DNA of 64,000 nucleotides from Macrostomum lignano (GCA_002269645.1 NIVC01000381.1:216023-280022), one strand, 5' to 3'; positions 2,585 through 51,130 are shown, counted from the first letter of the stretch. Made by a program: numbers and translations. Notes: generated from the sequence alone by a model not told the origin.

Positions 2585-3917
2585 TCATTTCTTCGCGAGA
2601 CTTTTGCGTGTTTGATAGCCCCGGAAATTTGCTTGAATTTTCGTGGCCGCCTGCTGCTCCTCAGTTGCGTTGGCCGCCTCGTCGCCATTCTGCTGCTCGG
2701 ATTGCTGGAATTCCATGTGAATTACATTTTATGATAATCAAGTGCGCCTTAACTACTAAACAGTAAGTAGAATATTAGAATACGAAGAAGGAAATGAAAA
2801 TTTTTTCAATTTAATGAAAACCAATAACTTTAATATCGTCACTCAAAATGTCTCAGTGTCCGAGTGTCTTAATGTCAGAGTGTCTCAGTGTCAGAGTGTC
2901 TCAATGTAAGAGTGTCTTAATGTCTTAATGTCTTAATGTCAGAGTGTCCTAATGTCAGAGTGTCTCAATGTCAGAGTGTCTCAATGTCAGAATTTCTTAA
3001 TGTCCGAGTGTCTTAATGTCCAAGTGTCTTAATGTCAGAGTGTCCTAATGTCAGAGTGTCTCAATGTAAGAGTGTCTTAATGTCAGAATTTCTTAATGTC
3101 CGAGTGTCTTAATGTCCAAGTGTCTTAATGTCAGAGTGTCCTAATGTCAGAGTGTCTCAATGTAAGAGTGTCTTAATGTCAGAATGTCTTAATGTCCAAG
3201 TGTCTTAATGTCAGAGTGTCCCAATGTCAGAGTGTCTAATTGTCCAAGTGTCTTAATGTCAGAGTGTCTTAATGTCAGAGTGTCTTAATGTCCAAGAGTT
3301 TTAATGTCAGAGTGTCCTAATGTCAGAGTGTCTTAGTGTCCAAAGTATCTTAACGTCAGAGTGTCTTAATGTCAGAGTGTCTTAATGTCAGAGTGTCTTA
3401 ACGTCAGAATGTCTTAATGTCCGAGTCTCTTGATATCAGAGTGTCTCAATGTCCGAGTGTCTTAGTGTCCCAAGTGTCCTTGTGTCCAAAGTGTCTTAGT
3501 GTCCAAAGTGTCTTAGTGTCCGAGTGTCTTAGTCTTTGAGAGTCTTAGCGCATTAGTGCAGTGGCCTACCAATAGTAAAAAAGTAACAGCCTACTCACCT
3601 GAGCAGCCACAAACTCCTCCCTAGTCTTGAAGCCATCGAATGCCGCCTGAATAGTCTCAGCCGCCGTGTCCTCATCCATCGCATCCTTGCTGGGATCCGC
3701 TGGCCCCTCCTTGCCGGCATTGTTCTCAGCGAACTGCTGTCTGGTTAGAAAGCCTTCAAAAGCGGCCTGAATTGTCTCGGCAGCCTTGGTCTCGTCTTGC
3801 TGCACGTGCTGCGGCTTCTGGTTGAAGAAGACGTAGTCAAATAGCCCGGCGAGGTCGTAAAACACCTCGCTGTCATCTCGATCGCCGAGTACCTTGGAAA
3901 TTAAGGGAAAGATGTTG

Positions 3918-4000
<83 letters not shown>

Positions 4001-4011
4001 GGATAGATAGG

Positions 4012-4094
<83 letters not shown>

Positions 4095-6776
4095 ATAGAT
4101 AGATGGATAGATAGACATACATAGGCAGACTCACAATGCACAGCTTGCCGGCAAGATCAAAGTGCCGCACTACAGGCAGCGTGTGCTCCTTAAAATAGGA
4201 CATCCGCTTTGACACGGCGGCAATGTTGTCACCCAGGCCGCCCTGCTCGCGGCCCCTGGCCAACAGCCGGCGCACCATGTAGGTCTCCTCGCAGTCCAGC
4301 AGCACGGTGAGGTCGGGCTGGCCAACGGTTTTGTACAGGTCGCGCAGCTGGTTGGCGTTGATCGGGTAGCCCTCCAGCAGGATGCAATTCGCTCCGCGGC
4401 CTTTTTCTGTCAACAGTCGACGCAATTCTGCTGCGTCAACTTCCTCGTCCAGGTCGCCCTGAGTGGCGATGTCGACTAGCGCGGACCAGGCGGCGTTGGC
4501 TCCGGCACCAAGCGACCTGTTGCGCGCCTCCTCGGAGGCGTTGATGTGCACGAAGCCCGCGTAGCGCTCGGCGACTCGGCGCAGCTGACTGGACCTGCCG
4601 CTGCCCGGGCCGCCCATCACCAGCACTATCGGGCACTGCGGCAGGTCCGACGGCCGCTTCACCGGCTCGGGCACGTTTTCGATCTCCTCGATGTACGTGA
4701 CGGCCGAAGCAGACACCGCGGCAGCCTCCGACTCTTCTTCGGTGTCGTCTCTCGAGTCGGCGCCCCCTCGCCGGCCTTTGGCGCCTTCTTGGGCCCGGCG
4801 CTGGTGTCGACAGGATCGTAGAAGGCGTCCATTGCTCGGGCAGCCTCGGCAAACACGGAGGCATCGTCAAGGTCCTCGTCAACCGGCACAACAACAAGTC
4901 GACGCGCCTCGTCGTAGATTTGACAGGCTGGCAGGCCGGCCGACCGGAAGTGGCCGATGCGGCGGCCGATGTTAGCGGGCTGGTCCTCGATGGCGCCGAG
5001 GCGGTGGTATCGCCGAAGCAGCCGCTCCTGAAGCAGGTCCTCCTCAAAGTCGAGCAGCAGGGCACGGTCTGGCTGCTTGATCTGAGTTCAGAACAGTGGA
5101 GTTGAGTAGCGGATTGAGGATGCTCATGTGCGACCGGTGCACAAATTTTATGCAATTCCGGCTGTGAATCTCCGCTGCAACGTCTTCGATGCCCATGAGC
5201 GTTTACCAACAGAAGTACGAGTAGTACTTCTTAGTGCAACAGTAGTAGCAACTATAGGGAGTGCGCCTCTGTCTTTCTATTCAGATAAAAACGATAAAGA
5301 CGTCAGGGTGCCCTCCACCTAAATTCCAGCAAGACGCTCTACACTTACGTGCTCAGCAATGGCGTCGACCTGCTCAGGCGAGCGCGGGTAGCCTTCAACA
5401 AACACGCCTCGGCAGCGTCCGTCGGCCACCAATTGATTGACGGCGTCGATCAGCGCCGGCAGCAGCAGGTCTTCTGGCACAGCGTCGCCGCGTTCGAAAG
5501 CGGCCGCCGCCACTGCCCAGCGTTGACGCGAGGCGTCGCGCGAATCCCGGATGCCGTTGCGGACCAGGTCACCGACGCACAAGCTGGCGAAGCCGTACCG
5601 CTGGGCCAGGTGGCGGCAGATGACCCGCTTGCCGCTGCCGGGACCGCCCAGCACCAGCACTAGCGGGCAGGTGAGCGGCGCCGTCAGCTTCTGCAAATTA
5701 GACGAGTCGGAGAGGGCCGACGATTCTCTGACGGCTACGGCGGCGGCCGCTGCGACCTGCTGTCGGCTGGCGTCTTCGACAGCTTCGTAATTGGCGGAGT
5801 TTCCGCCGCCACCGATGGGCGGTAGGACCGGCTTCTTTTCGCCCAAATCAGACACCGATGAGGCTGGTAAAAAGTTTGTTTGGAGGCAAATGAAGAGCTA
5901 GGGGATAATTAAGATCAACATGCGCATGGATACGTACGCAAGTACATACACCTTTATGAGTAACCATTACTCTCATTGTCTGGCAGTGTGTACCTACTCC
6001 CTGCCCTGAGGATTGGCTTTCATTGTTTATCTCTGGCCTGTTCATCAATTTCATTGTTTATCTATGACCCGTGTATGAATGCCATTGTTTATCTCTGGCC
6101 TGTGTTATCAACTTCATTGTTTATCTCTAGCCTGTGTTATCAACTTCATTGTTTATCTCTGGCCTGTGTTATCAACTTCATTGTTTATTTATGGCTTATA
6201 TTATCAACTTCTTTGTTTATCTCTGGCCTGTGTTATCAACTTCATCAACTTCATTGTTTATATATGGCTCGTGTTATCAATACCATGGTTCAGTGGTGGC
6301 CAAACTATTGCTTGTCTAACAAAAAGACAACAGAAATATTGTCGAACAGGAATATTAACAGTCTTTGGTTTTTAGACTCATCATACATATACACTTAGTA
6401 GCAAGTATTAAGCATGACTGTAGCTCGTAGCAGAATTTGCAGCCAATTTCACTTACTGTGGCTGGTCGATCGCTTTGCGGACCTTGGTGGCGTCACCGGG
6501 GGCAGCGGCGTCTTGGCCCGCTTAGCCTCAAGGAAGAGGTCCCAGCGCACTCCGGAGACACCCTGTACTTTGATCTTGTCCAGGCACTGCTGCAGGTAGG
6601 CAATGTGATCCGATGGTCTGTGGTACATCAGGCCGGTCATGAGGCACTGCGGTTAAGAGTTTAGGATAAAATAGTAAATTTCTTGCTGTTTAAATATTTT
6701 TCTTTGTTATTTTCATACTTACCTCAAAGAGTTGCGGGATCTGTTTCTTGGAAACGTACTCTTTTGCGTCGGACAT
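2585..6776 (-). CDS. AK5: Adenylate kinase 5-like protein (N-terminal RIIa/Dpy-30-like docking domain, two AK domains, three C-terminal IQ-like motifs); 6 exons, one apparent frameshift
   Basis: Exons (minus): 6723-6776, 6457-6646, 5349-5863, 4135-5081, 3599-3892, 2585-2704. All GT-AG with matching phases (0,1,0,0,0). N-terminus [44 protein letters not shown] resembles that of vertebrate AK5. P-loops GGPGSGKR and GGPGSGRS. Last exon QSEQQ...[18 protein letters not shown]. Spliced length 2120 nt = 3n+2: frame changes between the AK domains inside exon 4 (~4660-4860). Confidence 0.88.
2850..3545. repeat. 16-bp minisatellite (aatgtcagagtgtctt) filling AK intron 5
   Basis: About 40 degenerate units read directly. 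Confidence 0.9.
3917..4115. repeat. (GATA)n microsatellite filling AK intron 4
   Basis: About 50 near-perfect GATA units. Confidence 0.97.
6015..6275. repeat. 32-bp minisatellite (ttcattgtttatctctggcctgtgttatcaac) in AK intron 2
   Basis: About 7 degenerate units. Confidence 0.85.
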
Positions 6777-8761: not shown

Positions 8762-9610
8762 TTAGGTGCCGAAAGCCTGCACTACCAAATACATTAAGGA
8801 CAGCAGCCGCACAGCCACTCTTCCCTGCTCGCTGACTGAGTTGCCGCCCGTGACTGTGACGCAGCCGCTGCCGCCGATGCAGGCGGAGCCGCCACCTCCT
8901 CCAGCCTGGCCAAATCCGAGACCTCCACCGCCTCCGCTAAAACCACCGCCGGCCCCAGGGGCTCCTTTTCTGCCTCCAGCGCTCCCGCCTCCGCCGCCAC
9001 CTCCACCGAATCCGCCTCCGCCGCCACCTCCACCGAATCCGCCGTCGCCGTCACCGCCACCACCGCCACTGCCGCCAATCCAGCCGTCAGCTTCGCTGCC
9101 GCCTCGCTCTCCATCGGGGTCGCCTCGTCTCGAGTTGACGGCTTTGCCGAGCTAGCCGGCACCGCAGCCCCCGTGGCTATAATCATCTGGAGTGTCCATC
9201 GGGTTGTTGAAGCTCTACTTATCTGCACTGGCAGCTGCTACTGCTCACTCTTGAACACGACATCGAGCCTGTAGGCCCTCTCCCGAATCAGCTGCTCGAG
9301 ATTGTCCACCGTCCACACGGATTCGCCCGCCTCGGAACCGAGAACTCGCGTCACGTGACTCGCCGTCGGTCCCGGAGACTGCGACGCATCGTTGATGAAG
9401 ACGAGTTGGCAGGTGGAGGTGCCCTCACGAAAAGCCGCCAAAGCGCAGGCTCTCATTCCGCGCATGAACAGACAGTCTGGCACCGAAGCCACATTGGTCT
9501 CGGTGATAACGTCACACTGCTCACAATTCGGTCGAGCGAGACGGGCAGGGCCGAGCGGACGCGCCTGTACTTAGTCTTTGTGCAGTTCGCTGCTGATGAA
9601 GGCAACACCT
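8762..9610 (-). pseudogene. Pseudogene copy (copy 1) of the PAN + ALK/LTK-like glycine-rich protein
   Basis: Homologous to 11624-13665 and 15445-17464. 2-bp GT insertion in exon 1 (agcagtgtgacg vs agcagtgacg, ~9512). Intron 1 runs straight into the middle of exon 3 at ~9220, so exon 2 is lost. TGG>TAG nonsense at 9152-9154. Terminal TAA at 8762-8764. 5' end not resolved. Confidence 0.85.
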
Positions 9611-11303
9611 CTGCAGCTTCTTTCGTGAATTAGTTGATTTTAGAGTTACTTTCTTGCATGCATACGAGTATTGCCACAGATGTTGTAGTGCTACTACGCT
9701 TCTATGGATCTGCGGTTGCTGTAGATGCATTTTAATTGTTGCTTACCTATAATTGGTTCCAAAATCACCAGCGCCAATAGCAAACAGAAAGCCTTCATGC
9801 TACTTATTAATCCACGATAAAAATATTTTCGAGATTAGTGCCGAAGCTCGCGTGTGTTTCTCTGCAGTTTGAAATTTCCTATCTCCCAGCTGTTCCAGCC
9901 GAAATATACATCGCAAATGGAGTCGGTGTCAACAGCGTAACAGATTTTATCTCCTTATTTTTCTAATACCTGCTGGTTTAGTGTTTACTCCCACACTTTA
10001 ATAAACAGCAGTCGAGATATTTAAGACGTTGATAGACATATATAGTGATTTTTCGAAATAATTGACAGGTTTCATGTAGAATTTGAGACAGGAAGCAGAG
10101 CCAGAGCATTCTCAGGAGACTTAACTCTCGAAGAAATTTAAATTATTTCTATTTCAGTGATCTTGCCCGTAGAACGTGGTAATCATGCTGTGCATTACTT
10201 GTAATTAGCTGTTCTGTCCTCCATACGAGCATCGCTCAGATAAATTGGCTTCTAATAGAAATCGTACGATTGATTCGAAACTTACTACTTTCTTGTATCA
10301 TAAGCCTCTCTGTTGAAGTCTACTGGATAAACTGGACAAACGACTTACTAGACTATCCGATCCAAAGAGGCTAAACCAAACCATACAGACAAACCATAGT
10401 CACATTTTGTTCTACACACCACACCGCACCGCACAATGTCCCAGCTTGTGCGAAGAATTTCCTCAGTTGTGAAGTCAGCGAAGGCGCCGTTTGGTACAAC
10501 AAAATCAACAGAACAGTTACAGGCTGTTGACTACGTTCCGGGCAATGCATTGAGTCTGGCTCAACTTTAATTTTTCGCAGAAATGCTATGCAACCAGATT
10601 TCCTCGGTCTCTTCAAGTCTCCTTCAAATTCAAACATCTAGTAAGTTAGAGGCAGCTCGTGTACTCCTCTGATGAGAAGTCGGCTCTGGATTGGCATGCC
10701 CAGATTGACATGGGAATCCTCTGTTTCTGTGCAAGCGATTCGCCACACGGCTTCAGTTTTTTACTCATGCGGATTCAGAGAGACGTAATTTATCTATCTA
10801 TCCTTCTATTTTTTTAACTTCATGCGTCAACAGCAACCACACGGGGCAATGCAGAATCCAGAAGTTAATGCTAAGCTTGGTTGACGTGGAGGTTTGTCCA
10901 CTTTGTGTCCTCATCCATTCAAAAGGGCTGTATAAAGGAGAGTTCAAAAGAGCGACGAACTCAACCTTCTCTGCCGCGTTTCTGCAGCTGCTGCAGAAAT
11001 TTGAAAAAAACGTTGCTGAAAAAGCGGCAACGCTAAGAGTACATTTGTATTTTTGGCTGTTAAATTCAACTTGGTAAAAATAACATAAAGGTACATTTTT
11101 AACTCGAGGTTTCAGTAGAAGGGGTGGCAACGGGGTATTCATGCGCGTTGTGTATCAAAATATAAAATATTGAAACTAAAGCGCATTTGCATATCTTTGG
11201 ATGAAAGCTTTAAAACAAGCGGCTAAAGAAATAAAATATGGCTTTTTGTTATTTTGTTATTGGTTAAAATTAAAGGCAAACTTTGCCATTGTCCACGTAT
11301 ACT

Positions 11304-11599
11304 TCCCTGTATTCACGGGTCTTTTTTGGCTCGCTTGGTTGAAATACTCTTGACTCTTGGATTCCAGTCAAACTTCACTTAACAACATTGAGATGAATTA
11401 TGTTGAGTTCAATGCAGCAATTTCGAATGTACTCATGTAGTTTCGAAGTAGTTTCGAATGTAGTTTCGAAGTACATTCGAAATTGCTGCATTGAACTCAA
11501 CATAATTCATCTCAATGTTGTTAAGTGAAGTTTGACTGGAATCCAAGAGTCAAGAGTATTTCAACCAAGCGAGCCAAAAAAGACCCGTGAATACAGGGA
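11304..11599. mobile_element. 296-bp hairpin MITE / foldback (130-bp perfect inverted arms)
   Basis: 11304-11433 (tccctgtattcacggg...tcgaatgtact) is the reverse complement of 11470-11599. The 36-bp spacer is made of tagtttcgaa repeats. CT on both flanks could be a 2-bp TSD (weak). Confidence 0.85.
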
Positions 11600-11623
11600 C
11601 TCGGTATAAAGCAAAATATGACG

Positions 11624-13665
11624 TCAGCACGTCGAGGATGAAGCGTGCAGCAGCCGCACAGCCACTCTTCCCTGCTCTCTGTCTGAGTTGCCGCCAGTGA
11701 CGGTGATGCAACCACCGCCGCCGATGCAGGCGGAGCCGCCGCCTCCGGCAGCGTGGCCGTCTCCGAGACCACCGCCGCCTCCGCTGAAGCCGCCGCCGGC
11801 GCCTGGGGCTGCGGCTTTGCCTCCAGGGTTGCCGCCTCCGCCGCCGCCGCCGCCGAATCCGCCGTCGCCGCCGCCTCCGTCGCCGCCGCCTCCGTCGCCG
11901 CCGCTGCCGCCGATCCAGCCGTCGGCCGCGCTGCCGCCTCGCTCTCCGTCGGTGCTGCCTCGTCTCGGGTTGACGGCCTTGCCGAGCCAGCCGGCACCGC
12001 AGCCGCCGTGAGTGTAGCCGGACCCAGTGCGGCTCGGAGTGTTGGAGCCCGGAGCCCCGTTGGTTCCACCAAAGCCGTTGAAGCCGGAGTACGAGCCAAT
12101 CGTGTCCGAACCGTTGCGTCCGGCCTCACCAGGCAGTCTTGTTGTTTGGATCGTTTAATTGGTTTGAGTACCATCTCTGTTGTAATGTTGCAGTGCTTCT
12201 TACTGCTTAAAAACTTGACTAGTCCTTGATCCTGGCTGGTTTCATGTGTTGCTAGAACTTCTATCATGGTTCTATCTTTCAATAAAGTCAATAGGATAAA
12301 CTATACATTGATACCCCAAACCAAGTGTGCCTAAACGAGAGTTGGAAAACCTGGCGTCATTTGCAGTGCAAGTTAGCTGAAGTCAATCGCTCCACCAATG
12401 CTGGTTTTTAATTTTGCTCAGTTGTTTGTCCTACACAGCAATGCTTCTTAAATTCTTAGATTTATCGTTCAAATGTATCACCAGGAGCAATACAAAATTT
12501 CCAACTACACTTAACGGGAAGTGAGCTTCTCTTTTTACCACAACATGGTACTTTGGGCCTCACTCAGCATATGTACTATACACGGGTGAGCATATATTTT
12601 CAACTCACTATAAGAAGTATATTCACACAAAAATGTGGCGTCTTAGTGGTATCGCTGAAACCTCGACTGCTTTGAGAACCTGTCAGATGCAAAGCACACG
12701 TCGCTGACCCACTGAAGACATCCCGGCTTGCACGAAAGCGAGTTTGTCTGTGGCAAAAACACCATTTCGGGAAACTCCTCACCGTTTCTACCCGTGGCGC
12801 CACCGCCGCCGCCGCCCGCAGCCAGCAGCAGCCGAGTCTCCGATCCGTCGCTTGTCCACACGAAGCTGCCGCCGCCTCCGCCAGGCGCAGCGCCGTTCAC
12901 CGATTCGTCGCTGCCCGCCTGTCCAACTGCGATGTCCAGTCGGGTTCCGGCCGTCAGGCTGAAGTTGGCAGCCGCGGTGGCTCCGTGGCCTCCGACGGTG
13001 CCTTTGGACAGCTTGCCGCCGCCTCTGGCTCCGGCGGCCTCGATGCGGTAGCAGCCGGTGACGCCGATCTGCAGGTGCTGGACGGACCCGCTGCTGCCCG
13101 TGGACGAGTCTGCAATTATAACAACGCGTAGAAAACAGACCTTCTGATCTCAGCTGCATCCAATTGATTATATTTGGAATATGCCAGCAAAATATAAGGA
13201 TACTGATATCTGCACTGGCAGCTGCTACTCACTCTTGAACACGACATCGAGCCTGTAGGCCCTCTCCCGGATCAGCTGCTCGAGGTTGTCCACCGTCCAC
13301 ACGGAGTCGCCCGCCTCGGAACCCAGAACTCGCGTCACGTGACTCGCCGTCGGTCCCGGAGACTGCGACGCATCGTTGATGAAGACGAGTTGGCAGGTGG
13401 AGGCGCCATTGGGAACAACCGCCACAGCACAGCCTCTCATTCGGCACCTGAGCAGACAGTCTGGCACGGAAGCCACGTTGGTTTCGGTAATGACGTCACT
13501 GCTCACGGTCGGGTCGAGCGAGACGGGGAGGACCGAGCGGACGAGTCTCAGAGGCTTGCAGCTGGGTGCAGCTGTCTGCGGCGTCTGCGATGCAGCAACT
13601 GCAGCGAGGCAGCAGAGCAGATAGAGCTCCGTCAGCACTGAGAGGCCATCATTGAAGCCAAACAT
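11624..13665 (-). CDS. Secreted PAN/apple + ALK/LTK-type glycine-rich domain protein, copy 2 (intron-2 acceptor mutated)
   Basis: Exons 13233-13665, 12783-13109, 11624-12138 (424 aa if spliced like copy 3). Signal peptide; PAN-like motif SVPDCLLRCRMRGC...TCQL; exon 2 QHLQIGVTGCYRIEAAGARGG...NFSLTAGTRLDIAVGQAG...GGGGGSFVW...LLLAAGGGGG matches the ALK/LTK glycine-rich region; exon 3 is poly-Gly. The acceptor is CAA|G instead of CAG|G (12139). Confidence 0.75.
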
Positions 13666-14399
13666 TTTTCCGGCTGGTAGAGAAGCGACTCAGAGTCAAA
13701 GTCTACTGTATCGGAAAATTTTTAATTGAGAGAGAACGACGGGGGACGGTGGGGAGCTGAGTTTATAGCTTGGATAATAAAGAATGAGGTATGCGTGGGC
13801 CGCTTGATCATTATCTCTATCTACTGTCAGCTGAGGTCCGCTAATTAGCTGCATGCAAAAATTATGCAGCCAACGATGCGTATTTGCCATTTGCATCAGA
13901 AATGTTGTGTGTGGCTTTTTAATGAAGCTAACAGCAGCGCACCAGGAATGCTAAAACAAAAATGCTATTTCTCTTACGATGATGGGGTTGAAGTCTTTGC
14001 ATTGAGTTGATTGGGCATAAAGTTTTGCAATACTGCTTTTAGTTTGCTGCCCAGTAGGACAATCGAATGCACACTTTATTTTCTGGCGTTTAACAGTTGC
14101 TATTCCTGTAAGACTGTCAAAAAAACCTACTGCAGATAGACTAAAGCATGCCCGTGCGTATGACTCAAGGACTGCTCAAGTAGAATGACGGGAAACTGCG
14201 ATTCAAAAGATGAACATTGGCTCTGCCTCCTATCGAAAGCAATAACAATTTCAATATGAAAAAAGTGAAAACTTCCCATCTCCGTAGGGTATTTTTCGGC
14301 GAAAACCGGCTTCCTTATGTTTCTCCAAGAAACGTCTTTTTTTCTTGAGAATTCCTTGGTATGACTGCGTACGTACCCGCGCGCGTGTGCTGCTCAGGG

Positions 14400-14500
14400 G
14401 AGGCGGCGGTATGGGCAGGGCAGCAATGCCTCTCGGCGGTTGTGAGACAATGTCGCTTGATGTGCGCCAGGGTGCACACAGACCCCTGCCTCTAATGCCT
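14400..14500 (+). mobile_element. Short dispersed-repeat fragment sharing its 3' end with the SINE-like insert at 59330-59590
   Basis: gagacaatgtcgcttgatgtgcgccagggtgcacacagacccctgcctctaa vs gtgacaatgtcgcttaaagtgcgccagggtgcacacagtccgctgtctctaa. Confidence 0.5.
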
Positions 14501-14596
14501 TCAATAAAAAAACTAAAGTACTAATAATCTTTTAAAATAAACAGGCGCAAAAGGCAAATACTTGATCAATTTTCTTGATAAATATTGGCCGCCTTC

Positions 14597-14770
14597 TGTT
14601 TGTTTGCCGGTAGCCTTTTGGTTGTTTGTCGGTTGCCTTTTGGTTGTTTGCCGGTAGCCTTTTGGTTGTTTGTCGGTTGCCTTTTGGTTGTTTGTCGGTT
14701 GCCTTTTGGTTGTTTGTCGGTTGCCTTTTGGTTGTTTGTCGGTTGCCTTTTGGTTGTTTGTCGGCTGTTT
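14597..14770. repeat. 22-bp minisatellite (gccttttggttgtttgtcggtt)
   Basis: About 8 units read directly. Confidence 0.9.
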
Positions 14771-15444
14771 ATCAGTTTTTTATGAATGGGCATCCGTGAG
14801 ACCATTGATTACCATATGAGACGTAATTACCTGTTCTTAAAAACCTAAATTACTCAATTACTCATTCACTAAAATAGATCAATAATCTTGCTCTGATGCA
14901 AAACACCGAACTACGAGCTGTGTAAATTTCGCAGTGCTACAGAGTCACAATCAATTGTGCCAGCTACTAAATCTAAAAGACTTGTACTTTATTACACACG
15001 CTCACTCAGGGTCAGGCATGTACAACTCTGTGGCCCTGGGGTTGCCACTCATAACTGGCCAATTTTCGTGCACAGAGAAGCCCCAACTGAGTGTCACCGC
15101 TCCAATCGAACCAGGGGTCTCGCTGGTTACAGTTAAGCCGCTCCGCTCGATAAAGAATCAACCAGGATTATTGTGAAAATAATGACCAAGGTCCGTAGGG
15201 CCAATAAAGTCAGGGTTCCTTTGATATTGAATGTTCATCCAATTAAAAATTGAATTAAAGCGTTTTCAAAGATTCTGCAACTGCTGTTGACAGGCGCACC
15301 TCAAGAGGCTCCGTGGCCTTCAACAGAATTTTAAAAGAAAAAAGATCCATTTATGTCAGTAACATTGACACTTTCAAATTAGCAACGAACTCTTCAAGTT
15401 TAATTAATTCTGCACGGGGCTGTCAGTAACCGGTTATTCGAAGA

Positions 15445-17464
15445 TCAGCACCCATCGGGAGGAGCAAGCAGCCGCACAGCCACTCTTCCCTGCTTGTCTG
15501 AGTTGCCGCCAGTGACAGTGATGCAACCACCGCCGCCGATGCAGGCGGAGCCGCCGCCTCCTCCAGCGTGGCCGAATCCGAGACCACCGCCGCCTCCGCT
15601 GAAGCCGCCGCCGGCGCCTGGGGCTGCGGCTTTGCCTCCAGGGTTGCCGCCTCCGCCGCCGCCGCCGCCGAATCCGCCGTCGCCGCCGCCTCCGTCGCCG
15701 CCGCTGCCGCCGATCCAGCCGTCGGCCGCGCTGCCGCCTCGCTCTCCGTCGGTGTTGCCTCGTCTCGGGTTGACGGCCTTGCCGAGCCAGCCGGCACCGC
15801 AGCCGCCGTGGGTGTACCTGGACCCAGTGCGGCTCGGAGTGTTGGAGCCCGGAGCCCCGTTGGTTCCACCAAAGCCGGTGAAGCCGAAGTACGAGCCAAT
15901 CGTGTCCGAACCGTTGCGTCCGGCCTCACCAGGCAGTCCTGTTGTTTGGATCGTTTAATTGGTTTGAGTACCATCTCTGTTGTAATGTTGCAGTGCTTCT
16001 TACTGCTTAAAAACTTGACTAGTCCTTGATCCTGGCTGGTTTCATGTGTTGCTAGAACTTCTATCATGGTTCTATCTTTCAATAAAGTCAATAGGATAAA
16101 CTATACATTGATACCCCAAACCAAGTGTGCCTAAACGAGAGTTGGAAAACCTGGCGTCATTTGCAGTGCAAGTTAGCTGAAGTCAATCGCTCCACCAATG
16201 CTGGTTTTTAATTTTGCTCAGTTGTTTGTCCTACACAGCAATGCTTCTTAAATTCTTAGATTTATCGTTCAAATGTATCACCAGGAGCAATACAAAATTT
16301 CCAACTACACTTAACGGGAAGTGAGCTTCTCTTTTTACCACAACATGGTACTTTGGGCCTCACTCAGCATATGTACTATACACGGGTGAGCATTTATTTT
16401 CAACTCACTATAAGAATTATATTCATACAAAAATGTGGCGTCTTAGTGGTATCGCTGAAACCTCGACTGCTTTGAGAACCTGTCAGATGTAAAGCACACG
16501 TCGCTGACCCACTGAAGACATCCCGGCTGGACGAAAGCGAGTTTGTCTGTGGCAAAAGCACAATTTCGGGAAGCTCCTCACCGTTTCTACCCGTGGCGCC
16601 ACCGCCGCCGCCGCCCGCAGCCAGCAGCAGCCGAGTCTCCGACCCGTCGCTTGTCCACACGAAGCTGCCGCCGCCTCCGCCAGGCGCAGCGCCGTTCACC
16701 GATTCGTCGCTGCCCGCCTGTCCAACTGCGATGTCCAGTCGGGTTCCGGCCGTCAGGCTGAAGTTGGCAGCCGCGGTGGCTCCGTGGCCTCCGACGGTGC
16801 CTTTGGACAGCTTGCCGCCGCCTCTGGCTCCGGCGGCCTCGATGCGGTAGCAGCCGGTGACGCCGATCTGCAGGTGCTGGACGGACCCGCTGCTGCCCGT
16901 GGACGAGTCTGCAATTATAACAACGCGTAGAAAACAGACCTTCTGATCCCAGCTGCATCCAATTGATTATATTTGGAATATGCCAGCAAAATATAAGGAT
17001 ACTGATATCTGCACTGGCAGCTGCTACTCACTCTTGAACACGACATCGAGCCTGTAGGCCCTCTCCCGGATCAGCTGCTCGAGGTTGTCCACCGTCCACA
17101 CGGAGTCGCCCGCCTCGGAACCCAGAACTCGCGTCACGTGACTCGCCGTCGGTCCCGGAGACTGCGACGCATCGTTGATGAAGACGAGTTGGCAGGTGGA
17201 GGCGCCATTGGGAACAACCGCCACAGCGCAGGCTCTCATTCGGCACCTGAGCAGACAGTCGGGCACCGAAGCCACGTTGGTTTCGGTAATGACGTCACTG
17301 CTCACGGTCGGGTCGAGCGAGACGGGCAGGGCCGAGCGGACGAGTTTCAGAGGCTTGCAGCTGGGTGCAGCTGTCTGCGGCGTCTGCGATGCAGCAACTG
17401 CAGCGAGGCAGCAGAGCAGACAGAGTCTCAGCCACAGTGCGAGGCCGTCTTTGAACGGCAGCAT
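15445..17464 (-). CDS. Secreted PAN/apple + ALK/LTK-type glycine-rich domain protein, copy 3 (intact, 417 aa)
   Basis: Exons 17032-17464 (ATG at 17464, MLPFKDGLALWLRLCLLCCLAAVAASQ signal peptide), 16582-16908, 15445-15938. Canonical GT-AG, phases 1/1, total 1254 nt = 418 codons with no internal stop. Ends GRVAVRLLAPPDGC* with no TM segment. Confidence 0.85.
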
Positions 17465-17841: not shown

Positions 17842-18740
<899 letters not shown>

Positions 18741-28561: not shown

Positions 28562-29030
28562 CGCTTTCCACCCCTTCCTCCCGCTATTTTATAGCAACCA
28601 CCCCTTCCTCCCGCTATTTTATAGCAACCATCCCTTCCTCCCGCTATTTTTAGCAACCACCCCTTCCTCCCGCTACTTTATAGCCACCACCCCTTCCTCC
28701 CGCTTTTTTATAACCACCACCCCTTCCTCCCGCTTTTTTATAACCACCACCCCTTCCTCTCGCTTTTTTATAACCACCACCCCTTCCTCCCGCTATTTTA
28801 TAGCAACCACCCCTTCCTCCCGCTACTTTATAGCCGCCACCCCTTCCTCCCGCTATTGTATAGCCGCCACCCCTTCGTCCCGCTATTTTATAGCAACCAC
28901 CCCTTCCTCCCGCTATTGTATAGCCGCCACCCCTTCCTCCCGCTATTTTATAGCAACCACCCCTTCCTCCCGCTATTTTATAGCCATCACCCCTTCCTCC
29001 CGCTATTTTACAGCCGCCACCCCTTCCTCC
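28562..29030. repeat. 30/33-bp minisatellite (accccttcctcccgctattttatagcaacc)
   Basis: About 15 units read directly. Confidence 0.92.
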
Positions 29031-30277
29031 ATTATCTTAAGTCCTGTAACATACTCTTATGCATACTAGAGAAACAATGCTAAATGAATATGTACGCGTA
29101 CTATTTCTACGTGCTATTTGTACTTTTTGCGGTATTTTGTATCATGCACAGTTTCAAATGATTGTTCTCGCACTTTGTTTTTGCATTCCTGTAAACATAT
29201 CAATAGCATGTTTATATTATGCGAAATAGAAGCTTTATTAGACAGTTTTATTAACCAACTAATAGAAGGCATTAAAATTGCCCGAACTTTTAATCGATAG
29301 TCTTTCTTAATCCCATAATAATCTGCTCTAAGTAATAATTGTTGGTAAAATATTAATAACCGTTTCGCTTGATTTTTCGTTAATCGTTTTCGTTTCTTTA
29401 ATAAAAGCGGATTCGTTGCTTTTGTTCAATTGAATTGTTTTAATAAATTTTTATTTGATTGTTTGGAAGAAAAAGTTGAAATTTATTGGAACGCCTACTG
29501 CTGCCTTTAATGCTTTGGTCGCTAGAAGGAGTTCTATGTTTGACTAATAAATAAAACTCTTTGTTATATTACTAGTTGACAAAATAAATGCAAATTAGTG
29601 CAAAAAGTCAAGTTTTTATCCTGTCTTCTTTAAATTGATTTTTTTACTAATAGCTGCAGCAGATAACATTGTATAATTACATTAGTATATAGTTATTAAA
29701 AAATGCTATTGCACTACTCTTAGGAGTTAGGAGTACTAGTTTTAAGTAGTGCAAAAATAGACGAAATAGTCGATGGTTTACAAGTCACTTTATACGAATT
29801 GAGAGTAAATTTACTCTCACAGCAGCCTGGATAAAAAATAGATTTCGAATCGAACTTCAGAAAACAGCAAACCAAAACCAAATCAAAGTAATTAATTTCG
29901 CAAATAATTTTTAAACATTCAAACCCAGCCAAATTGAAAACAAGGAAGTTTTGGAAGTCTGTGATTACTCAAATGAAGGACTTTGCGCGTTGAGTGTCCA
30001 ATTCATGCCTTATAAGAACATTATAGGAATATTCTGGCCAGGGTTCAACTGAATAGCAAAAGTGCCATACTATACAAACTGAGCGATAAATTTATTAAGC
30101 GATTAGTAAAGACAAGATTACAAAATCTGAAGTTGAGCCAAAAAGTCATAGGCGCAGATAAGCTTGTATATTTTACAATAATACCGCATATACTCAAATC
30201 ACGCTAGAGTACTAAATGTTATATTACCAAGATTTATAATCATGCTAGTTACATATATTTCCTTTTTGAACGAATTT

Positions 30278-32311
30278 TTACTCAATTGACTGTCTGTCAC
30301 TGGTGGACTCAACAGTTTTTATCGTGACCGTCTCCGGCTCGTCAGGCGGCGCGTAGTAGAAAAAAGCGGCCAGTCCCATCAGGGCGACTTCCAGCACCTT
30401 GAGTACGCCGGCAAAGGCGATCACAATCAGCCAGAAGCTCTCGCCGTTGTAGAAGCTGCACGAGCCCTGATGACCGCAGCCGCCGGTCCACAGGCTGCAG
30501 GTGGTGTCAATCAGTTTTCCCATCAAGGGCGGTCCTGGGATGCTGCCGAACAGTCTCAGGATCATCCACTGCAGGCCAAGGCCGAAGTCTTTGAGTGTAG
30601 CCGGTATGACTCGCATCGTGCAGTGCAGAATTGGCACCGAGGTTGAGAATAGTACAAAAATGAACAAAAACAGCATGCTGAGCAGAATCTGCAACTTGTG
30701 ACACGCGTTTTTTATACACGCTCCCTCCACTGCCGAGAACTTTTGATCGCTTCCGTCGATTGCAATCTGTCCGGTAATGCAAGTGCAGTCTGCATAGTAC
30801 TTTGCGCCATTGATCATCGTGCCATTGCTTTGACAGCCTGCGTAGCAGGGCGAGTAATAGATGACGGAGTCTGCGCCGCACACCGGACTGTACATGAACT
30901 TGCTCTCCTGACAGTGGCAGTTCATGTTGCACGTAGCATTCAGCGAGTTGGACTGGTTTGGCGTAAGCGGGTAATTTTGATTGACACCTGCAAACTTCTG
31001 CGGATTGCACTTGGCCAGCAGCCCGAGTCCGAGTATCAAATCCACACAGGCCACGATGAAGCTCAACCACAGAAGTCGTTGTACAGAAAACTTAGTAAAT
31101 CTAATCAATAAACCGCCTGTCATGACGCCAAAGGCGGCTGCGGGCACGGTTACGAGGCCCATAGTGATTGTAGAAGAGCTTTTTGTTAAGTAGAACAAAA
31201 TTTGCAGGATTTTTGGACCGAAAGTGGATAATCCAGTCATTATGACATACTGCATTGCGCCGGAGAATGACAGGAACACAAATGTAGCATTTTTCAGAAG
31301 GGTAACAATTGAACTCCAGAAATGCTTGGCACTGATCTGCGTTGCTGCATTTTCTGCGCCAACGATGTCTCTAGGCGATTCGTGTCTACTCTGCGTCTGA
31401 GAACTTGTCGAGTGGGAAAATCTTTTAGGAAACCCAAAAATGGGTACGACAGATACCAGTGACAGGGTTCCAGACAGAAAAAAGCCGATCCACCAGGCGC
31501 CAACCCACAGGTTATTATTCTTAGGGCTGATATCAGACGGCGTCACGCCCAGCTCGACGTAGATATTGAGGAATATGCCGCCAAGAAGGTAGCCCATGGC
31601 GGGACCGATCAAGCTCATCATGTAGTAAGCACCCAGGAACGCGCCCGACTGCTGCACAGTCAGGTTGTCGTCAAGGTACGCCACGGCCAGTGTGTACAGC
31701 GGAGACGCGCCCACTCCGTGCAGGAACTGTCCGAGCCAAAACACGAACTTGTAGTTGTTGAGAGTCTGCTTGGTACAGAAATCCGGATAGACCTTGCCGG
31801 ACAGGTAGCACAGAGGCGACACCGGACTCTGGTAGTTGTAGGCGTCGGTGGTGAACTGTGGAATGGTGAAGACAAACGATCCGACGCTCATGATGAGCAG
31901 CCCGATGGAGATGAGGCGACTCCGCCGGTACCGGTGTCCGATGTAGGTGACTGGGACCAGGCACAGAACGCTCCCGATGTCGTACATGGAGGCGATGAGT
32001 CCGCTCTCGGATGAAGTCATATCGTATCGCAGCTCGAGGGTTGTTAGCACCGAGTTGACAAAGCCGTTCACGACCAGGCCTTGAGTAAAACTGCTCAGGC
32101 AGAGCCACAGCAGCAGGCAGGAGGGTCGGGCGAAGCACTGGCAGCACTGGGGTTGGCACTTGGGGTGCCAGTTACACGCCACCTCATCCGGGTCGTCATT
32201 GAGCTCATTGCTGTCGCTTTTCAACACATCATCAGTTTTCGGAGAACTTTTCGCAGCGACTTGTTTAGGTTCCTCCACCTCTTGGATTTGAGATGGCGTT
32301 GCTGGCCTCAT
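30278..32311 (-). CDS. Organic anion transporting polypeptide (OATP/SLCO, SLCO4-like), intronless, copy A
   Basis: Single ORF (track 30278-32452; likely start MRPATP at 32311 just after a ttttttcag acceptor, 677 aa). SFTQGLVVNGFVNSVLTTLELRY, GLIASMYDIG, WVGAWWIGF, Kazal-like loop PVCGADSVIYYSPCYAGC, GSIPGPPLMGKLIDTTCSLW; about 12 TM segments. Confidence 0.95.
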   Translation of the reverse strand: MRPATPSQIQEVEEPKQVAAKSSPKTDDVLKSDSNELNDDPDEVACNWHPKCQPQCCQCFARPSCLLLWLCLSSFTQGLVVNGFVNSVLTTLELRYDMTSSESGLIASMYDIGSVLCLVPVTYIGHRYRRSRLISIGLLIMSVGSFVFTIPQFTTDAYNYQSPVSPLCYLSGKVYPDFCTKQTLNNYKFVFWLGQFLHGVGASPLYTLAVAYLDDNLTVQQSGAFLGAYYMMSLIGPAMGYLLGGIFLNIYVELGVTPSDISPKNNNLWVGAWWIGFFLSGTLSLVSVVPIFGFPKRFSHSTSSQTQSRHESPRDIVGAENAATQISAKHFWSSIVTLLKNATFVFLSFSGAMQYVIMTGLSTFGPKILQILFYLTKSSSTITMGLVTVPAAAFGVMTGGLLIRFTKFSVQRLLWLSFIVACVDLILGLGLLAKCNPQKFAGVNQNYPLTPNQSNSLNATCNMNCHCQESKFMYSPVCGADSVIYYSPCYAGCQSNGTMINGAKYYADCTCITGQIAIDGSDQKFSAVEGACIKNACHKLQILLSMLFLFIFVLFSTSVPILHCTMRVIPATLKDFGLGLQWMILRLFGSIPGPPLMGKLIDTTCSLWTGGCGHQGSCSFYNGESFWLIVIAFAGVLKVLEVALMGLAAFFYYAPPDEPETVTIKTVESTSDRQSIE

Positions 32312-33214
32312 TTGATTTTTCTGAAAAAAAGCTTTTGTTTGATTCTTTCTTGTTAGAATTATTCTTCCAAGTTTTTCGGCCTGGTAAGCTTTATATAATC
32401 GGTCGCATAAACTTGCGATTTCGTTGTCTATGGCTTGCGGAACCGTTTTCACTTTTTGTCTGCTGCGGTGTTTTGGTCTTTCTGCAAAAGTGCAGATGTC
32501 TTTTTCCCGAGCGTTGCTATTAAAAGCGGCACATCTGTATGCAAACCAAAAGAATTATTTTTTATCTTTTGCACCATTTTGAAAGCAGTTAAGGTAACTA
32601 CTTGTTAAGTACATGCTAAATATTTTAAATGACTTTTAAGTTTTTGTCTGTTACAGGTCTCGGTTAGTTTGTATGCCAAACAATATTTATAAAACACACA
32701 TTTTTTAGTCAATAAATATTTAATAAAATGTCAGATACAAGCGTAATGCGAGTCAAAAAGATACTTTTATGCACGAAGTGGCGCTGAAAGGGTAAGCATA
32801 GTTTTTATCATCACAGCAAAGAGGAGTGAAATAGTACTGTAATTTCATAGTCTCTGATATCAACTGAACTACAAAGAGCGTTAATAGCGTGTATTTTTAA
32901 AGCATTTAAAATCGGATAATTACAATTACTGCACACTTTAGTATCCATGCTGCACGGAAGATATATTGTGCTAAACACGGTGAGAATAAAAAGAGCTTAA
33001 AAGTGTGACTAACTAGGCACGCAGTAAAACTGTTGGTAAATAGATTAGACGAAAACCACCAGAAGTTGCAGTATTATGAATTACATTGCTCGAACAACGT
33101 AGGATAAAATTAACAGTGATTAAAAACATTCAGCAGGAAAATAAAACAAAAAATAAGTCGCACATTAAAAAGCTGCATTACACAGACGCGGATCTGTAAT
33201 TCTTTAAAAATGGT

Positions 33215-35266
33215 TCAGGCAATGTCCGGTTTGAAAGCTTCGTTGGCGTGCGCCTCGGGGCCAGCGGACTGACCGTCAGGTTTGGTCTCGATTTCAATGT
33301 CAACCTGAATGACCTGGTCAGGCGGCACGTACAGCGCGGCGGCGAGGATCAGGAACAGAATCTCCAGGGCTTTCAGCACGGCCGCAAAGCCAAGCACCAT
33401 CGCCCAGAAGCTCTCGCCGTTGTAGAAGCTGCACGAGCCCTGCTGACCGCAGCCGCCTGTCCACAGGCTGCAGGTGGTGTCAATCAGTTTTCCCAGCACC
33501 AGGGGTCCCGGGATGCTTCCGAACAGTCTCAGGATCATCCACTGCAGGCCCAGGCCGAAGTCCTTTAGCCTAGCTGGTATTACTCGCATCGTGCACTGCA
33601 GCGTGGGTATCGAAATAAAGAAAATTCCAAATAGAAAGAAGCCAATGGTTACTAGCACAATGGGCATCTTGTTGCAGCTGGCGTCCTTGCAAGTGCCCTC
33701 CATAGCTGAGAAGTTGTAATTGTTTGCTGTAATCTGTCCGGTAATGCAAGTGCAGTTTACATAGTACTTTGCGCCATTGATCATCGTGGCATTGCTTTGA
33801 CAGCCTGCGTAGCAGGGCGAGTAATAGATGACGGAGTCTGCGCCGCACACCGGACTGTACATGAACTTGCTCTCCTGACAGTGGCAGTTCATGTTGCACG
33901 TAGCATTCAGCGAGTTGGACTGGTTTGGCGTAAGCGGGTAATTTTGATTGACACCTGCAAACTTCTGCAGGTCGCACTTGGCCAGCAGCCCGAGTCCGAA
34001 TAGCACGTCAACTGCCGCAACTCCAACGCACATCCAGAGTAGACTACGGACTGGCAAGTTGCTGAAGCGAATCACTAAGCCGCCGACTAGCAACCCGATG
34101 GCAGCGCTCGGCACGGACACTAGGCCGATGGTGAGGGTGGCCGTGCTCGCGCTCACCATGAACAGAGTCTGCAACACTTTCGGCCCAAAGGTTGACAGTC
34201 CGGCTACTAAGATAGCGTCCGCGGCACCGCTGAAGGAGATGAACACAAACACTGGGTTGCTCAGGATGACGCCAACCGAGGGGCAGAAGTCTTTAACGTT
34301 TAATTCCTGCATTTCGGCACATTTCGCTTCGGAGTTGCCATGCGTCTCTTGCTTTTTCTCGTGCTGAATGCGAGCCGATCCAGGGAAAAGTTTTGGAAAG
34401 CCAAACAAAGGAACCACAATAATAAGAGACAGAGTTCCAGAAATGAGAAAGCCGACCCACCAAGCGCCAACCCAGAGACTGGTGTTGCTTGGCGTTAGGT
34501 CTGACGGTGTCACACCCAGCTCGACGTAGATATTGAGGAATATGCCGCCAAGAAGGTAGCCCATGGCGGGACCGATCAAGCTCATCATGTAGTAAGCACC
34601 CAGGAACGCGCCCGACTGCTGCACAGTCAGGTTGTCGTCAAGGTACGCCACGGCCAGTGTGTACAGCGGAGACGCGCCCACTCCGTGCAGGAACTGTCCG
34701 AGCCAAAACACGAACTTGTAGTTGTTGAGAGTCTGCTTGGTACAGAAATCCGGATAGACCTTGCCGGACAGGTAGCACAGAGGCGACACCGGACTCTGGT
34801 AGTTGTAGGCGTCGGTGGTGAACTGTGGAATGGTGAAGACAAACGATCCGACGCTCATGATGAGCAGCCCGATGGAGATGAGGCGACTCCGCCGGTACCG
34901 GTGTCCGATGTAGGTGACTGGGACCAGGCACAGAACGCTCCCGATGTCGTACATGGAGGCGATGAGTCCGCTCTCGGATGAAGTCATATCGTATCGCAGC
35001 TCGAGGGTTGTTAGCACCGAGTTGACAAAGCCGTTCACGACCAGGCCTTGAGTAAAACTGCTCAGGCAGAGCCACAGCAGCAGGCAGGAGGGTCGGGCGA
35101 AGCACTGGCAGCACTGGGGTTGGCACTTGGGGTGCCAGTTACACGCCACCTCATCCGGGTTGTCCTTGAACTCTTCGTTCTCCTCGACCTCACTTACCAC
35201 TGGACTCATCTTGCTTTCATAATTTTGCTCGACCTTCTGCCCCGAGTTGGCTTTTCTGTTGTTCAT
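33215..35266 (-). CDS. Organic anion transporting polypeptide (OATP/SLCO, SLCO4-like), intronless, copy B (683 aa)
   Basis: Same OATP motifs; tandem paralog at constant offset 2967 bp. Splice acceptor atctcttttag lies ~20 nt upstream of the ATG. Confidence 0.95.
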   Translation of the reverse strand: MNNRKANSGQKVEQNYESKMSPVVSEVEENEEFKDNPDEVACNWHPKCQPQCCQCFARPSCLLLWLCLSSFTQGLVVNGFVNSVLTTLELRYDMTSSESGLIASMYDIGSVLCLVPVTYIGHRYRRSRLISIGLLIMSVGSFVFTIPQFTTDAYNYQSPVSPLCYLSGKVYPDFCTKQTLNNYKFVFWLGQFLHGVGASPLYTLAVAYLDDNLTVQQSGAFLGAYYMMSLIGPAMGYLLGGIFLNIYVELGVTPSDLTPSNTSLWVGAWWVGFLISGTLSLIIVVPLFGFPKLFPGSARIQHEKKQETHGNSEAKCAEMQELNVKDFCPSVGVILSNPVFVFISFSGAADAILVAGLSTFGPKVLQTLFMVSASTATLTIGLVSVPSAAIGLLVGGLVIRFSNLPVRSLLWMCVGVAAVDVLFGLGLLAKCDLQKFAGVNQNYPLTPNQSNSLNATCNMNCHCQESKFMYSPVCGADSVIYYSPCYAGCQSNATMINGAKYYVNCTCITGQITANNYNFSAMEGTCKDASCNKMPIVLVTIGFFLFGIFFISIPTLQCTMRVIPARLKDFGLGLQWMILRLFGSIPGPLVLGKLIDTTCSLWTGGCGQQGSCSFYNGESFWAMVLGFAAVLKALEILFLILAAALYVPPDQVIQVDIEIETKPDGQSAGPEAHANEAFKPDIA

Positions 35267-36833: not shown

Positions 36834-37140
36834 GGGGGTTGTAGCCTAGTGGCTAAAGCGTCGGACTCACGACTTCACGGCCGGGGGTTCGATTCCCAAT
36901 CCCACTCGGAACAATTTGTGACCTTGAGCAAAATGCTTAACTCTGCATTGCTTCAGTTCACCCGGCTGTAAAATGGGTGCCAGCATTAGCTGGGGTAGTT
37001 GAGGCTGTGTGGCGACCCCCCAGTCCTTGGACTGAACAGCCGTACGCAGCCTTCAGATGCGCCGCGCAATAGCTGCGGCTGAGCTGTCGGTTGCAGACCT
37101 GCCCGGGCAGGTGTAATCAATTATATTATTATATTATTTT
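36834..37140 (+). mobile_element. tRNA-derived CORE-type SINE, copy 1
   Basis: Pol III A box tagcctagtgg and B box ggttcgattcc. The central gtgaccttgagcaaaatgcttaac...cttcagtt...ctgtaaaatggg resembles the CORE domain. AT-rich (TAT) tail. Second copy at 42718-43021. Confidence 0.85.
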
Positions 37141-42717: not shown

Positions 42718-43021
42718 AGAATAACAATAATTGATTTCACCTGACCTAATGGGCAGATGTGCAACCGACAGCTCAGCCGCAGCTATTGCGCGGAGCATCT
42801 AAAGGCTGCGTACGGCTGTTCAGTCCAAGGATTGAGGGGTCGCCACACACCCTCGATTACCCCAGCTAATGCTGTCACCCATTTTACAGCTGGGTGAACT
42901 GAAGCAATTCAGTGTTAAGCATTTTGCTCAAGGACACAAATTGTTCCGAGTGGGATCGGGAATCGAACCCCCGACTTTCAAGTCGTGAGTCCGACGCTCC
43001 AACCACTAGGCTACAACCCCT
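42718..43021 (-). mobile_element. tRNA-derived CORE-type SINE, copy 2
   Basis: Reverse complement is highly similar to 36834-37140, with A and B boxes intact. Confidence 0.85.
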
Positions 43022-50716: not shown

Positions 50717-51130
50717 GGCCGACAAATTGATTATAAAAGTTATAACTTCAGCTACGAAGGTCACAGAAAATCCAGTTGCATTAGCCACTTAAATCTGCAC
50801 CTCAGAGCGGTACGTACTTGTACATGTAGATATATATTTAAACAAAATTTGTCACCTGACTTAAAAGCCTACAACAGCGAAGCACATGTATGAAAACTTA
50901 TAGGTAGGTAAGTTGTATGTTTACATTTTAACTTTAGCGTGACTGCCAATTACGGGTCATTCAAAATGATAAATTTCCAACCTGCATCATGTTAGGGCAT
51001 TCATAAATCCTTTTAAATTTTTACGAGCTAAATGTATCCAGGGGGTCGCCGGGGATTTTTTGTTTGGGGGGGGAACAAAGCCAAGAATTTTAAATGTACA
51101 TGTTCAATATTTTCAGAATTGGTGTTCTCA

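Follow-up and report, generated by a model that had tools for sequence, protein, structure and literature searches.

A predicted secreted protein joining a PAN/apple-like domain to an ALK/LTK-type glycine-rich domain, encoded in a decaying tandem array of Macrostomum lignano

The TNF-like/glycine-rich (TG) fold, represented in Pfam by PF12810 (ALK_LTK_GRD, GRD standing for glycine-rich domain), has been studied by experiment almost solely in the oncogenic receptors ALK and LTK, where it binds the cytokine. A locus of the flatworm Macrostomum lignano raises the question of what such a domain may do when no receptor is attached to it. The locus is a cluster of three gene copies, all on the minus strand, at positions 8762-17464 of a stretch of 64,000 nucleotides (GCA_002269645.1, NIVC01000381.1:216023-280022). 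This whole stretch is hereafter called the window, and all coordinates refer to it. An earlier note, made from the nucleotide sequence alone, had described the cluster as a tandem family of secreted proteins with PAN and ALK/LTK-type glycine-rich domains and no receptor kinase. We consider it probable, taking identity and role together, that the locus encodes a secreted PAN-TG protein acting as an extracellular binding or recognition protein. With one TG domain, one partner domain and no kinase, this compact (390-aa) animal protein offers an entry to the non-receptor role of the fold.

Only one copy, copy 3, is intact. Its gene model was established by three-frame translation and explicit splicing, and consists of three exons:

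17032..17464, minus strand: copy 3 exon 1, with the ATG, the putative signal peptide (aa 1-~27) and the PAN/apple-like domain (aa ~36-144), ending at a phase-1 GTGAGT donor
16582..16908, minus strand: copy 3 exon 2, the N-terminal half of the TG/GRD domain, matched by Pfam PF12810 and by the family profile
15445..15938, minus strand: copy 3 exon 3, the C-terminal half of the GRD, with polyglycine runs, the final beta-strand GRVAVRLL and the TGA stop at 15445-15447

The two donors, GTGAGT and GTGAGG, are both in phase 1, and the acceptors read TTGCAG and AACAG. The spliced coding sequence of 1254 nt ends in TGA and encodes 417 aa, for a mature product of about 390 residues. The stop codon lies 8 residues past the last GRD strand, and a polyadenylation-type ATTAAA is found 40 nt 3' of it, at about 15405. 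To place the exons within the domain, we used a profile of 49 relatives, from which the window sequences were excluded, against all 1065 stop-to-stop pieces of the window. Exon 2 was matched in copy 3 (E=3.7e-38) and in copy 2 (E=8e-37) at profile positions 41-157, and exon 3 in the same two copies (E=2.9e-32 and E=6e-30, respectively) at positions 153-310 (153-307 in copy 3). Since the two exons abut in the domain profile and jointly span the whole domain, they provide independent support for the splice model. The three-exon gene giving a 417-aa product is real. The only remaining match was a fragment of copy 1 (E=2e-13), so that the window holds no additional copies, and a tblastn search of the entire window with copy 3 as the query added none. 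A glycine-rich segment at 28617-29033, which has a weak tblastn match to the GRD (37-43% identity), was considered as a fourth copy; the family profile is silent there, which marks it as low complexity and rules it out.

The assignment of the window protein to the PF12810/TG superfamily is established. When exon 2 is searched alone, it matches the Pfam model above the gathering cut-off of 24.5 bits, both in copy 3 (E=1.1e-7, 32.5 bits) and in copy 2 (32.9 bits). Pfam gives zero matches for the full 417-aa protein, for exons 2 and 3 joined, or for exon 3 alone. The GRD part contains 35% glycine, and these negatives are probably an effect of the composition filter, because exon 2 alone passes it and a custom profile that bypassed the filter recovers the rest. 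Searched as a single sequence with phmmer against the chains of the PDB, the protein matches only the LTK and ALK ectodomains, and weakly (E between 0.03 and 0.16). A profile made of the window protein and its 49 relatives retrieves ALK with E=2.7e-27 (99 bits) over the whole TG domain (residues 62-355 of 7N00), LTK with E=7.9e-27 and SCD-2 of C. elegans with E=6e-16. The alignment with ALK begins at the first strand and extends to the closing one, where GRVAVRLL pairs with GEVNIKHY.

Structural comparison points the same way. The AlphaFold2 model of an M. lignano homolog that is 49% identical to the window protein (P0003) has a pLDDT (predicted local distance difference test) of 84.9, with values above 90 through the glycine-rich region. 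All 21 significant PDB matches of this model in Foldseek are TG domains of ALK, LTK or SCD-2 (E from 4e-10 to 5e-5, probability 1.0, TM-score 0.37-0.61, root-mean-square deviation of about 8 A, identity 18-27%), and the next match after this set, a weak one, is the fibre of cyanophage Pam3. By this homolog, the window protein would adopt the TG fold, and its loops and lattice either differ in detail from those of ALK and LTK or are mis-modelled, given the range of TM-scores and the deviation just quoted. Homology to the TG supradomain of ALK, LTK and SCD-2 (PDB 7N00, 7NX1, 7LRZ, 7LIR) covers the whole domain, within the same Pfam family.

The domain that precedes the GRD is predicted to be PAN/apple-like. 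The AlphaFold2 model of the window's exon-1 domain (pLDDT 78) has the order strands, helix, hairpin, and the top 20 Foldseek matches to it are all PAN modules, including the HGF N domain, plasminogen, apple 4 of FXI and the SML-2 lectin. The best of them is the HGF N domain 3HMS (E=0.0098, probability 1.0, TM-score 0.44/0.54). The cysteine motif Cys70-x3-Cys74-x4-Cys79-x11-Cys91, covering the helix and then the hairpin, is in register with the PAN_1 cysteines of coral homologs, and hhalign aligns the window domain to the coral PAN_1 region with E=0.019 over 37 columns. Three homologs bear the automatic UniProt name 'Apple domain-containing'. A word-indexed homolog search with the N-terminal domain alone returned nothing. 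We use the wording 'PAN/apple-like' because the support comes from a predicted fold and a cysteine pattern, without a sequence model.

The protein is predicted to lack a membrane anchor. Its N-terminus reads MLPFKDGLALWLRLCLLCCLAAVAA/SQ and includes a hydrophobic segment at aa 7-25, with a Kyte-Doolittle hydropathy over 19 residues of 2.18. Elsewhere the maximum is 1.56 against a threshold of 1.6, so that a second hydrophobic segment is lacking, at the C-terminus as elsewhere. Only the putative signal peptide is hydrophobic enough to form a membrane helix. The tyrosine-kinase motifs HRDLAARN, DFG-type and VAIK are absent from all frames of the 64 kb, save for DFG within two organic-anion-transporter (OATP) genes, and Pfam finds no kinase among the large open reading frames (ORFs) of the window that were tested. 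EGF-like modules, MAM and LDLa have no Pfam match in the 417-aa protein or its pieces. The homologs of M. lignano and of corals end at the same place, directly past the last GRD strand. The predicted product is hence a secreted soluble protein made of a signal peptide, a PAN-like domain and one complete TG domain, followed by the stop. Unlike ALK and LTK, it has no EGF-like module, transmembrane helix, kinase, MAM or LDLa, and its N-terminal partner is PAN-like.

The two other copies show how the array is decaying. Their parts, and a repeat that stands next to copy 2, are the following:

13233..13665, minus strand: copy 2 exon 1, with the putative signal peptide (first ~15 codons diverged) and the PAN-like domain; open
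12783..13109, minus strand: copy 2 exon 2, the N-terminal half of the GRD; open, with one synonymous-level difference from copy 3 (PF12810 E=8.8e-8)
11624..12138, minus strand: copy 2 exon 3, the C-terminal half of the GRD; open, with in-frame indels
11304-11433 and 11470-11599: perfect (100%) inverted repeat of 130 nt with a 36-nt spacer, directly 3' of the copy 2 stop
9247..9617, minus strand: copy 1 (pseudogene), exon-1-like piece with the PAN-like domain (87% aa identity) and a frameshifting 2-bp insertion
8798..9208, minus strand: copy 1 (pseudogene), 3' part of exon 3, with a TGG>TAG stop at 9152-9154

Copies 2 and 3 are 97.2% identical across 2009 bp, introns counted (11649-13656 vs 15467-17455). 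Every exon of copy 2 is open, and its indels relative to copy 3 (15, 3 and 3 nt) are all in-frame. However, the acceptor of its intron 2 (12139-12140) reads AA where AG is expected, through a G to A change at 12139, and the sole nearby AG lies one base downstream, where its use would shift the frame by +1. The last ~8 codons of copy 2 and its 3' flank are unrelated to copy 3. The two copies differ by 11.5 non-synonymous and 9.5 synonymous changes, which gives a ratio of non-synonymous to synonymous rates (dN/dS) of 0.45, compatible with purifying or mildly relaxed selection. In copy 1, a deletion took out exon 2 together with the beginning of exon 3, and the first ~30 nt of intron 1 are fused directly to the 3' part of exon 3. 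The array thus consists of an intact copy 3, a copy 2 recently disabled at a splice acceptor, and a copy 1 that deletion has turned into a pseudogene.

The 130-nt inverted repeat bounds the duplicated unit and stands where copy 3 has its 3' untranslated region and poly(A) signal. It could be a foldback insertion, one resembling a miniature inverted-repeat transposable element, or an assembly artefact; it contains an 11-bp tandem repeat. In the spacer between copies 3 and 2, at 14591-14764, a 22-bp unit, GCCTTTTGGTTGTTTGTCGGTT, is repeated 7.9 times with a 94% match. On the minus strand at 9747-9798, upstream of copy 1, a short ORF encodes MKAFCLLLALVILEPIIG and leads into a GTAAGC donor. It could represent an alternative exon for a signal peptide, with no relation to exon 1 of the other two copies.

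With two of the three copies damaged, and no window-encoded protein among the homologs listed, one may ask whether these exons belong to a larger gene that continues into transmembrane or kinase exons downstream, or whether the whole cluster is dead and copy 3 is open by chance. Several observations make this highly improbable. The stop follows the final GRD strand exactly as it does in the homologs of M. lignano and corals, the ATTAAA comes 40 nt after it, and no kinase motif occurs in the 64 kb. The next 1.7 kb on the same strand holds the 22-bp tandem repeat and then the start of copy 2. Finally, the frames of copies 2 and 3 have stayed open, with in-frame indels only and a dN/dS of 0.45. 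Much of the earlier note is borne out by these results: the 417-aa splice was reproduced exactly, with its signal peptide, PAN/apple-like domain, full ALK/LTK-type glycine-rich module and stop, without transmembrane helix or kinase; the lack of a receptor kinase agrees with the lack of tyrosine-kinase motifs in any frame of the window; and the three stages of decay it had distinguished (intact, splice-damaged, pseudogene) correspond to the intact copy, the AA acceptor, and the copy with deletion, frameshift and stop. The structural comparison with the TG domains of ALK and LTK that it had proposed was favourable for the GRD, where the homolog's model retrieves these receptors, and the exon-1 model came out PAN-like, if modestly so.

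Which proteins are closest to this one? At least 11 proteins of M. lignano come out as the best relatives of the 417-aa product (E from 1e-85 to 1e-40, 35-50% identity); their domains follow in the same order, and the NSSTG junction is conserved. These divergent paralogs support a lineage-expanded family. They include the 'Apple domain-containing'/PF12810 proteins A0A1I8HRN4, A0A1I8GEH1, A0A1I8GD17, A0A1I8I814 and others in UniProt, and BOX15_Mlig028980g1 at NCBI. These are 45-50% identical to the window protein over 60-86% of the query and share with it the signal peptide, the PAN-like domain, the NSSTG junction, the GRD and a short Cys-containing tail. Unlike them, the window protein comes from a decaying tandem array (the one M. 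lignano locus inspected for comparison is single-copy), and its GRD is interrupted by an extra intron.

The next relatives are cnidarian (E from 1e-25 to 1e-16). In Porites and Pocillopora, proteins with PAN_1 and ALK_LTK_GRD, both above the Pfam cut-offs, are found (P0017, P0021), and Nematostella has an EGF+GRD protein named 'loricrin' in RefSeq (XP_048576998). Like the window protein, these secreted proteins, among them Porites harrisoni ABFA07_017308 and the 'lysozyme-like' or 'loricrin-like' proteins of Pocillopora verrucosa besides that of Nematostella vectensis, place the N-terminal domain (PAN_1 or EGF) before a single GRD, to which the window GRD is 36-43% identical. They also end after the last strand, with the pattern C-x(4-5)-C...TGGN...G-x-V-x-I. 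The coral PAN passes Pfam PAN_1, unlike the flatworm N-terminal domain, and the corals have additions of their own, namely a COLFI-like piece or EGF modules and a GRD insertion of ~20 residues, in a GRD that is a single exon. An intron at the PAN|GRD boundary is common to the window, M. lignano and coral genes. Two ENA contigs of cnidarian-like sequence each have a PAN ORF on the strand of a 'GRD-only' ORF and 2.7 kb upstream of it, so that many matches that seem to consist of a GRD only are probably the last exons of PAN+GRD genes. The flatworm proteins form a lineage-expanded family whose counterparts in cnidarians have their domains in the same order.

Public names give little idea of these relationships. 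Automatic UniProt names of the M. lignano relatives are 'Apple domain-containing protein', 'WSC domain-containing', 'PE-PGRS family protein' and 'receptor protein-tyrosine kinase'. Five of them that are GRD-only or PAN+GRD (P0006, P0008, P0009, P0010 and P0031) are misnamed 'receptor protein-tyrosine kinase' or 'Protein kinase domain-containing', and in Nematostella and Pocillopora the composition appears to have driven the names 'loricrin' or 'lysozyme-like' (P0317, P0411). One of the five, P0009, was considered as a kinase-linked form on account of its name and rejected, as a Pfam scan finds no kinase in it. The same scan finds none in P0010, and the remaining relatives so named have no precomputed kinase family. 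As names such as 'receptor protein-tyrosine kinase' and 'loricrin' hide the family, their correction would be useful.

Further relatives are bacterial GRD proteins linked to the type IX secretion system (T9SS), PEP-CTERM or FN3. An exhaustive profile search retrieved 12,852 clusters at E<=1e-3, of which 7,500 pass 1e-10 and 2,260 pass 1e-30. The top-scoring clusters are proteins of 2,000-7,000 aa with GRD repeated 2-9-fold, and the only one of them that carries names is a T9SS-sorted 'glycine-rich protein' of Flavobacteriia. None of the 10 top matches scanned with Pfam has a kinase domain. By these results, kinase-less GRD proteins are the rule and ALK/LTK the exception. The bacterial multi-GRD surface proteins of Flavobacteriia resemble the window protein in having an extracellular, kinase-less PF12810-type module, and they outscore ALK against the family profile. 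They differ in that they are often 2,000-7,000 aa long, with 2-9 GRDs, and have T9SS, PEP-CTERM or FN3 modules where the window protein has PAN. ALK/LTK thus appear more distant from the window family than the bacterial members are, and the flatworm family looks like a single branch within a PF12810 superfamily that is extracellular, very large and for the most part bacterial, rather than a derivative of an ALK gene.

These relatives bear on one of the explanations put forward in the earlier note, in which the protein is a soluble decoy, ligand trap or co-factor of ALK signalling, its free TG domain binding the ALK ligand of the lineage. Homology over the whole length of the ligand-binding TG domain of ALK/LTK and SCD-2 speaks in its favour. 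Yet the single-sequence similarity to these receptors is marginal (E=0.03-0.16) and the identity in structural alignments is low (18-27%). No ALK/LTK is present among the 120 best matches listed (all with E<=6.4e-6), where cnidarian secreted proteins and bacterial T9SS proteins are, and 0 of the 10 best library matches scanned carry a kinase. The invertebrate ALK ligands Jeb and HEN-1 act differently from ALKALs, which also counts against a decoy, and neither an ALK gene nor an ALK ligand was seen in the window. Because the family is not ALK-derived by any of the similarity measures used, we give this explanation very little credit: the window GRD is far from ALK/LTK (E=0.03 with phmmer; 25-27% structural identity) and much nearer to cnidarian and bacterial GRDs. 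Two other statements of the earlier note have to be revised. The module was said to be otherwise known from ALK/LTK, which does not hold in view of the 12,852 clusters at E<=1e-3 with kinase-less members at the top. It was also presented as a candidate for an undescribed system, and PAN+GRD proteins of M. lignano, Porites and Pocillopora are already in the databases. The domain family, the architecture and the close homologs are present in Pfam, UniProt and RefSeq, and the system is thus known but uncharacterised, not undiscovered.

What remains is the role. We tentatively favour a soluble protein with a binding or recognition role outside the cell. Glycans and proteins are the general ligands of PAN modules, and the PAN-like domain would contact a target of either kind. 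The rigid polyglycine-II (PGII) lattice together with the TNF-like sandwich would provide a stable scaffold for the display of variable loops, as in the tips of phage tail fibres and in ALK. The turnover of genes in the array would reflect a fast-evolving secreted role, in immunity, at mucus or other surfaces, or in reproduction; the duplication and decay of the array and the many divergent paralogs of M. lignano fit a secreted family of fast turnover. The suggestion draws on the roles of PAN modules, on the PGII/TNF-like tips of phages and on the extracellular sorting signals of the bacterial relatives. In ALK/LTK and in the receptor-binding tips of phages, TNF-like and PGII elements together make a rigid platform for binding (PMC9608196; PMC13243192), and the Pam3 fibre has been published as ALK-GRD-like (PMC9608196). 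The phage tips in question (S16 gp38, Pam3 gp24) are those of trimeric fibres, unlike the window protein.

The same glycine-rich composition could be read in another way. The protein might be structural, with a polyglycine-II lattice serving as material in mucus, adhesive secretion, eggshell or rhabdites, and with PAN as a cross-linker or anchor. A GRD with 35% glycine and three N-glycosylation sequons would suit such a material, as would an even number of cysteines with a conserved C-terminal one, which could form intermolecular disulfides. The family is, moreover, expanded in a flatworm rich in glandular secretions, and RefSeq annotators chose the name 'loricrin' from composition. On the other hand, the glycines do not form low-complexity repeats but lie within a conserved globular fold, the homolog's model exceeding a pLDDT of 90 over the GRD; the protein is of small size and has a single domain; and bacterial and phage relatives use the fold in surface or adhesin proteins (PMC9608196). 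We regard a material or adhesive role as unlikely, though it ranks next after the binding role.

Several results weigh against the binding protein that we favour, in its identity or in its role. The GRD structure is the one predicted for a homolog, P0003. For the N-terminal domain, none of PAN_1 to PAN_4 of Pfam matches at E<=10, either in the window domain or in those of 8 flatworm homologs, and a profile of nine flatworm N-terminal domains retrieves neither a PAN family from Pfam nor anything from the PDB sequences. The Pfam matches foreseen by the earlier note were accordingly obtained for PF12810, above cut-off on exon 2, and not for PAN. The fold match of exon 1 to PAN is modest (TM-score 0.44-0.54, E around 0.01). 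Clearly functional copies amount to only 1 of 3. We also asked whether positive selection has acted between copies 2 and 3 and rejected it, as their dN/dS, from only 21 changes, is 0.45. Finally, our literature searches turned up no functional study of any kinase-less GRD protein; the sole remark that they yielded is on three fungal PF12810 proteins, described as offering 'no hint of a function' (PMC4859500).

The common domain order of flatworm and cnidarian proteins invites a wider proposal. PAN-TG proteins could be an ancient, eumetazoan-wide family of free secreted proteins with ligands of their own, sister or ancestor to the module that was fused to a kinase in ALK/LTK, and the TG module itself may ultimately come from bacterial surface proteins. 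We find this proposal rather doubtful at present. If it were true, study of the family would show what the TG fold bound before its use in cytokine receptors. With the same order of domains in cnidarians, the family could in any case serve to root the origin of the domain by which ALK binds its ligand.

The rest of the window contains other genes and repeats. Two tandem OATP/SLCO4A1-like genes, apparently intronless, lie on the minus strand at 30278-32452 and 33215-35266 and encode 724 and 683 aa. They match Pfam OATP with E of about 1e-144 to 1e-149 and have a Kazal insert; the best relative is an M. lignano protein (59% identity), followed by molluscan proteins (41%). An element of ~240 bp occurs twice in inverted orientation, at 36835-37071 and 42784-43021, with about 5.7 kb between the two. 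A sequence of M. lignano contig NIVC01002498.1, beside the gene of another M. lignano protein (P0033), matches it at 87% identity, and the element is probably a shared repeat family or a pair of transposon ends. The segments 51028-54207 and 54362-55150 contain long ORFs on both strands. The plus strand has two, of 1002 and 814 aa, and the minus strand one of 1059 aa with weak Pfam matches of coiled-coil type. They are adjoined by a fragment of a reverse transcriptase (RVT_1, E=3e-27), and 51028-55150 looks like a repetitive or retroelement-associated region. Other ORFs are a Pro-rich one with a cornifin-like Pfam match (30-1274), an adenylate-kinase-like one (3901-4716) and one with three LCCL-domain matches (48590-49654). 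A (TAAC)n microsatellite of ~40 units is found at 17842-18000.

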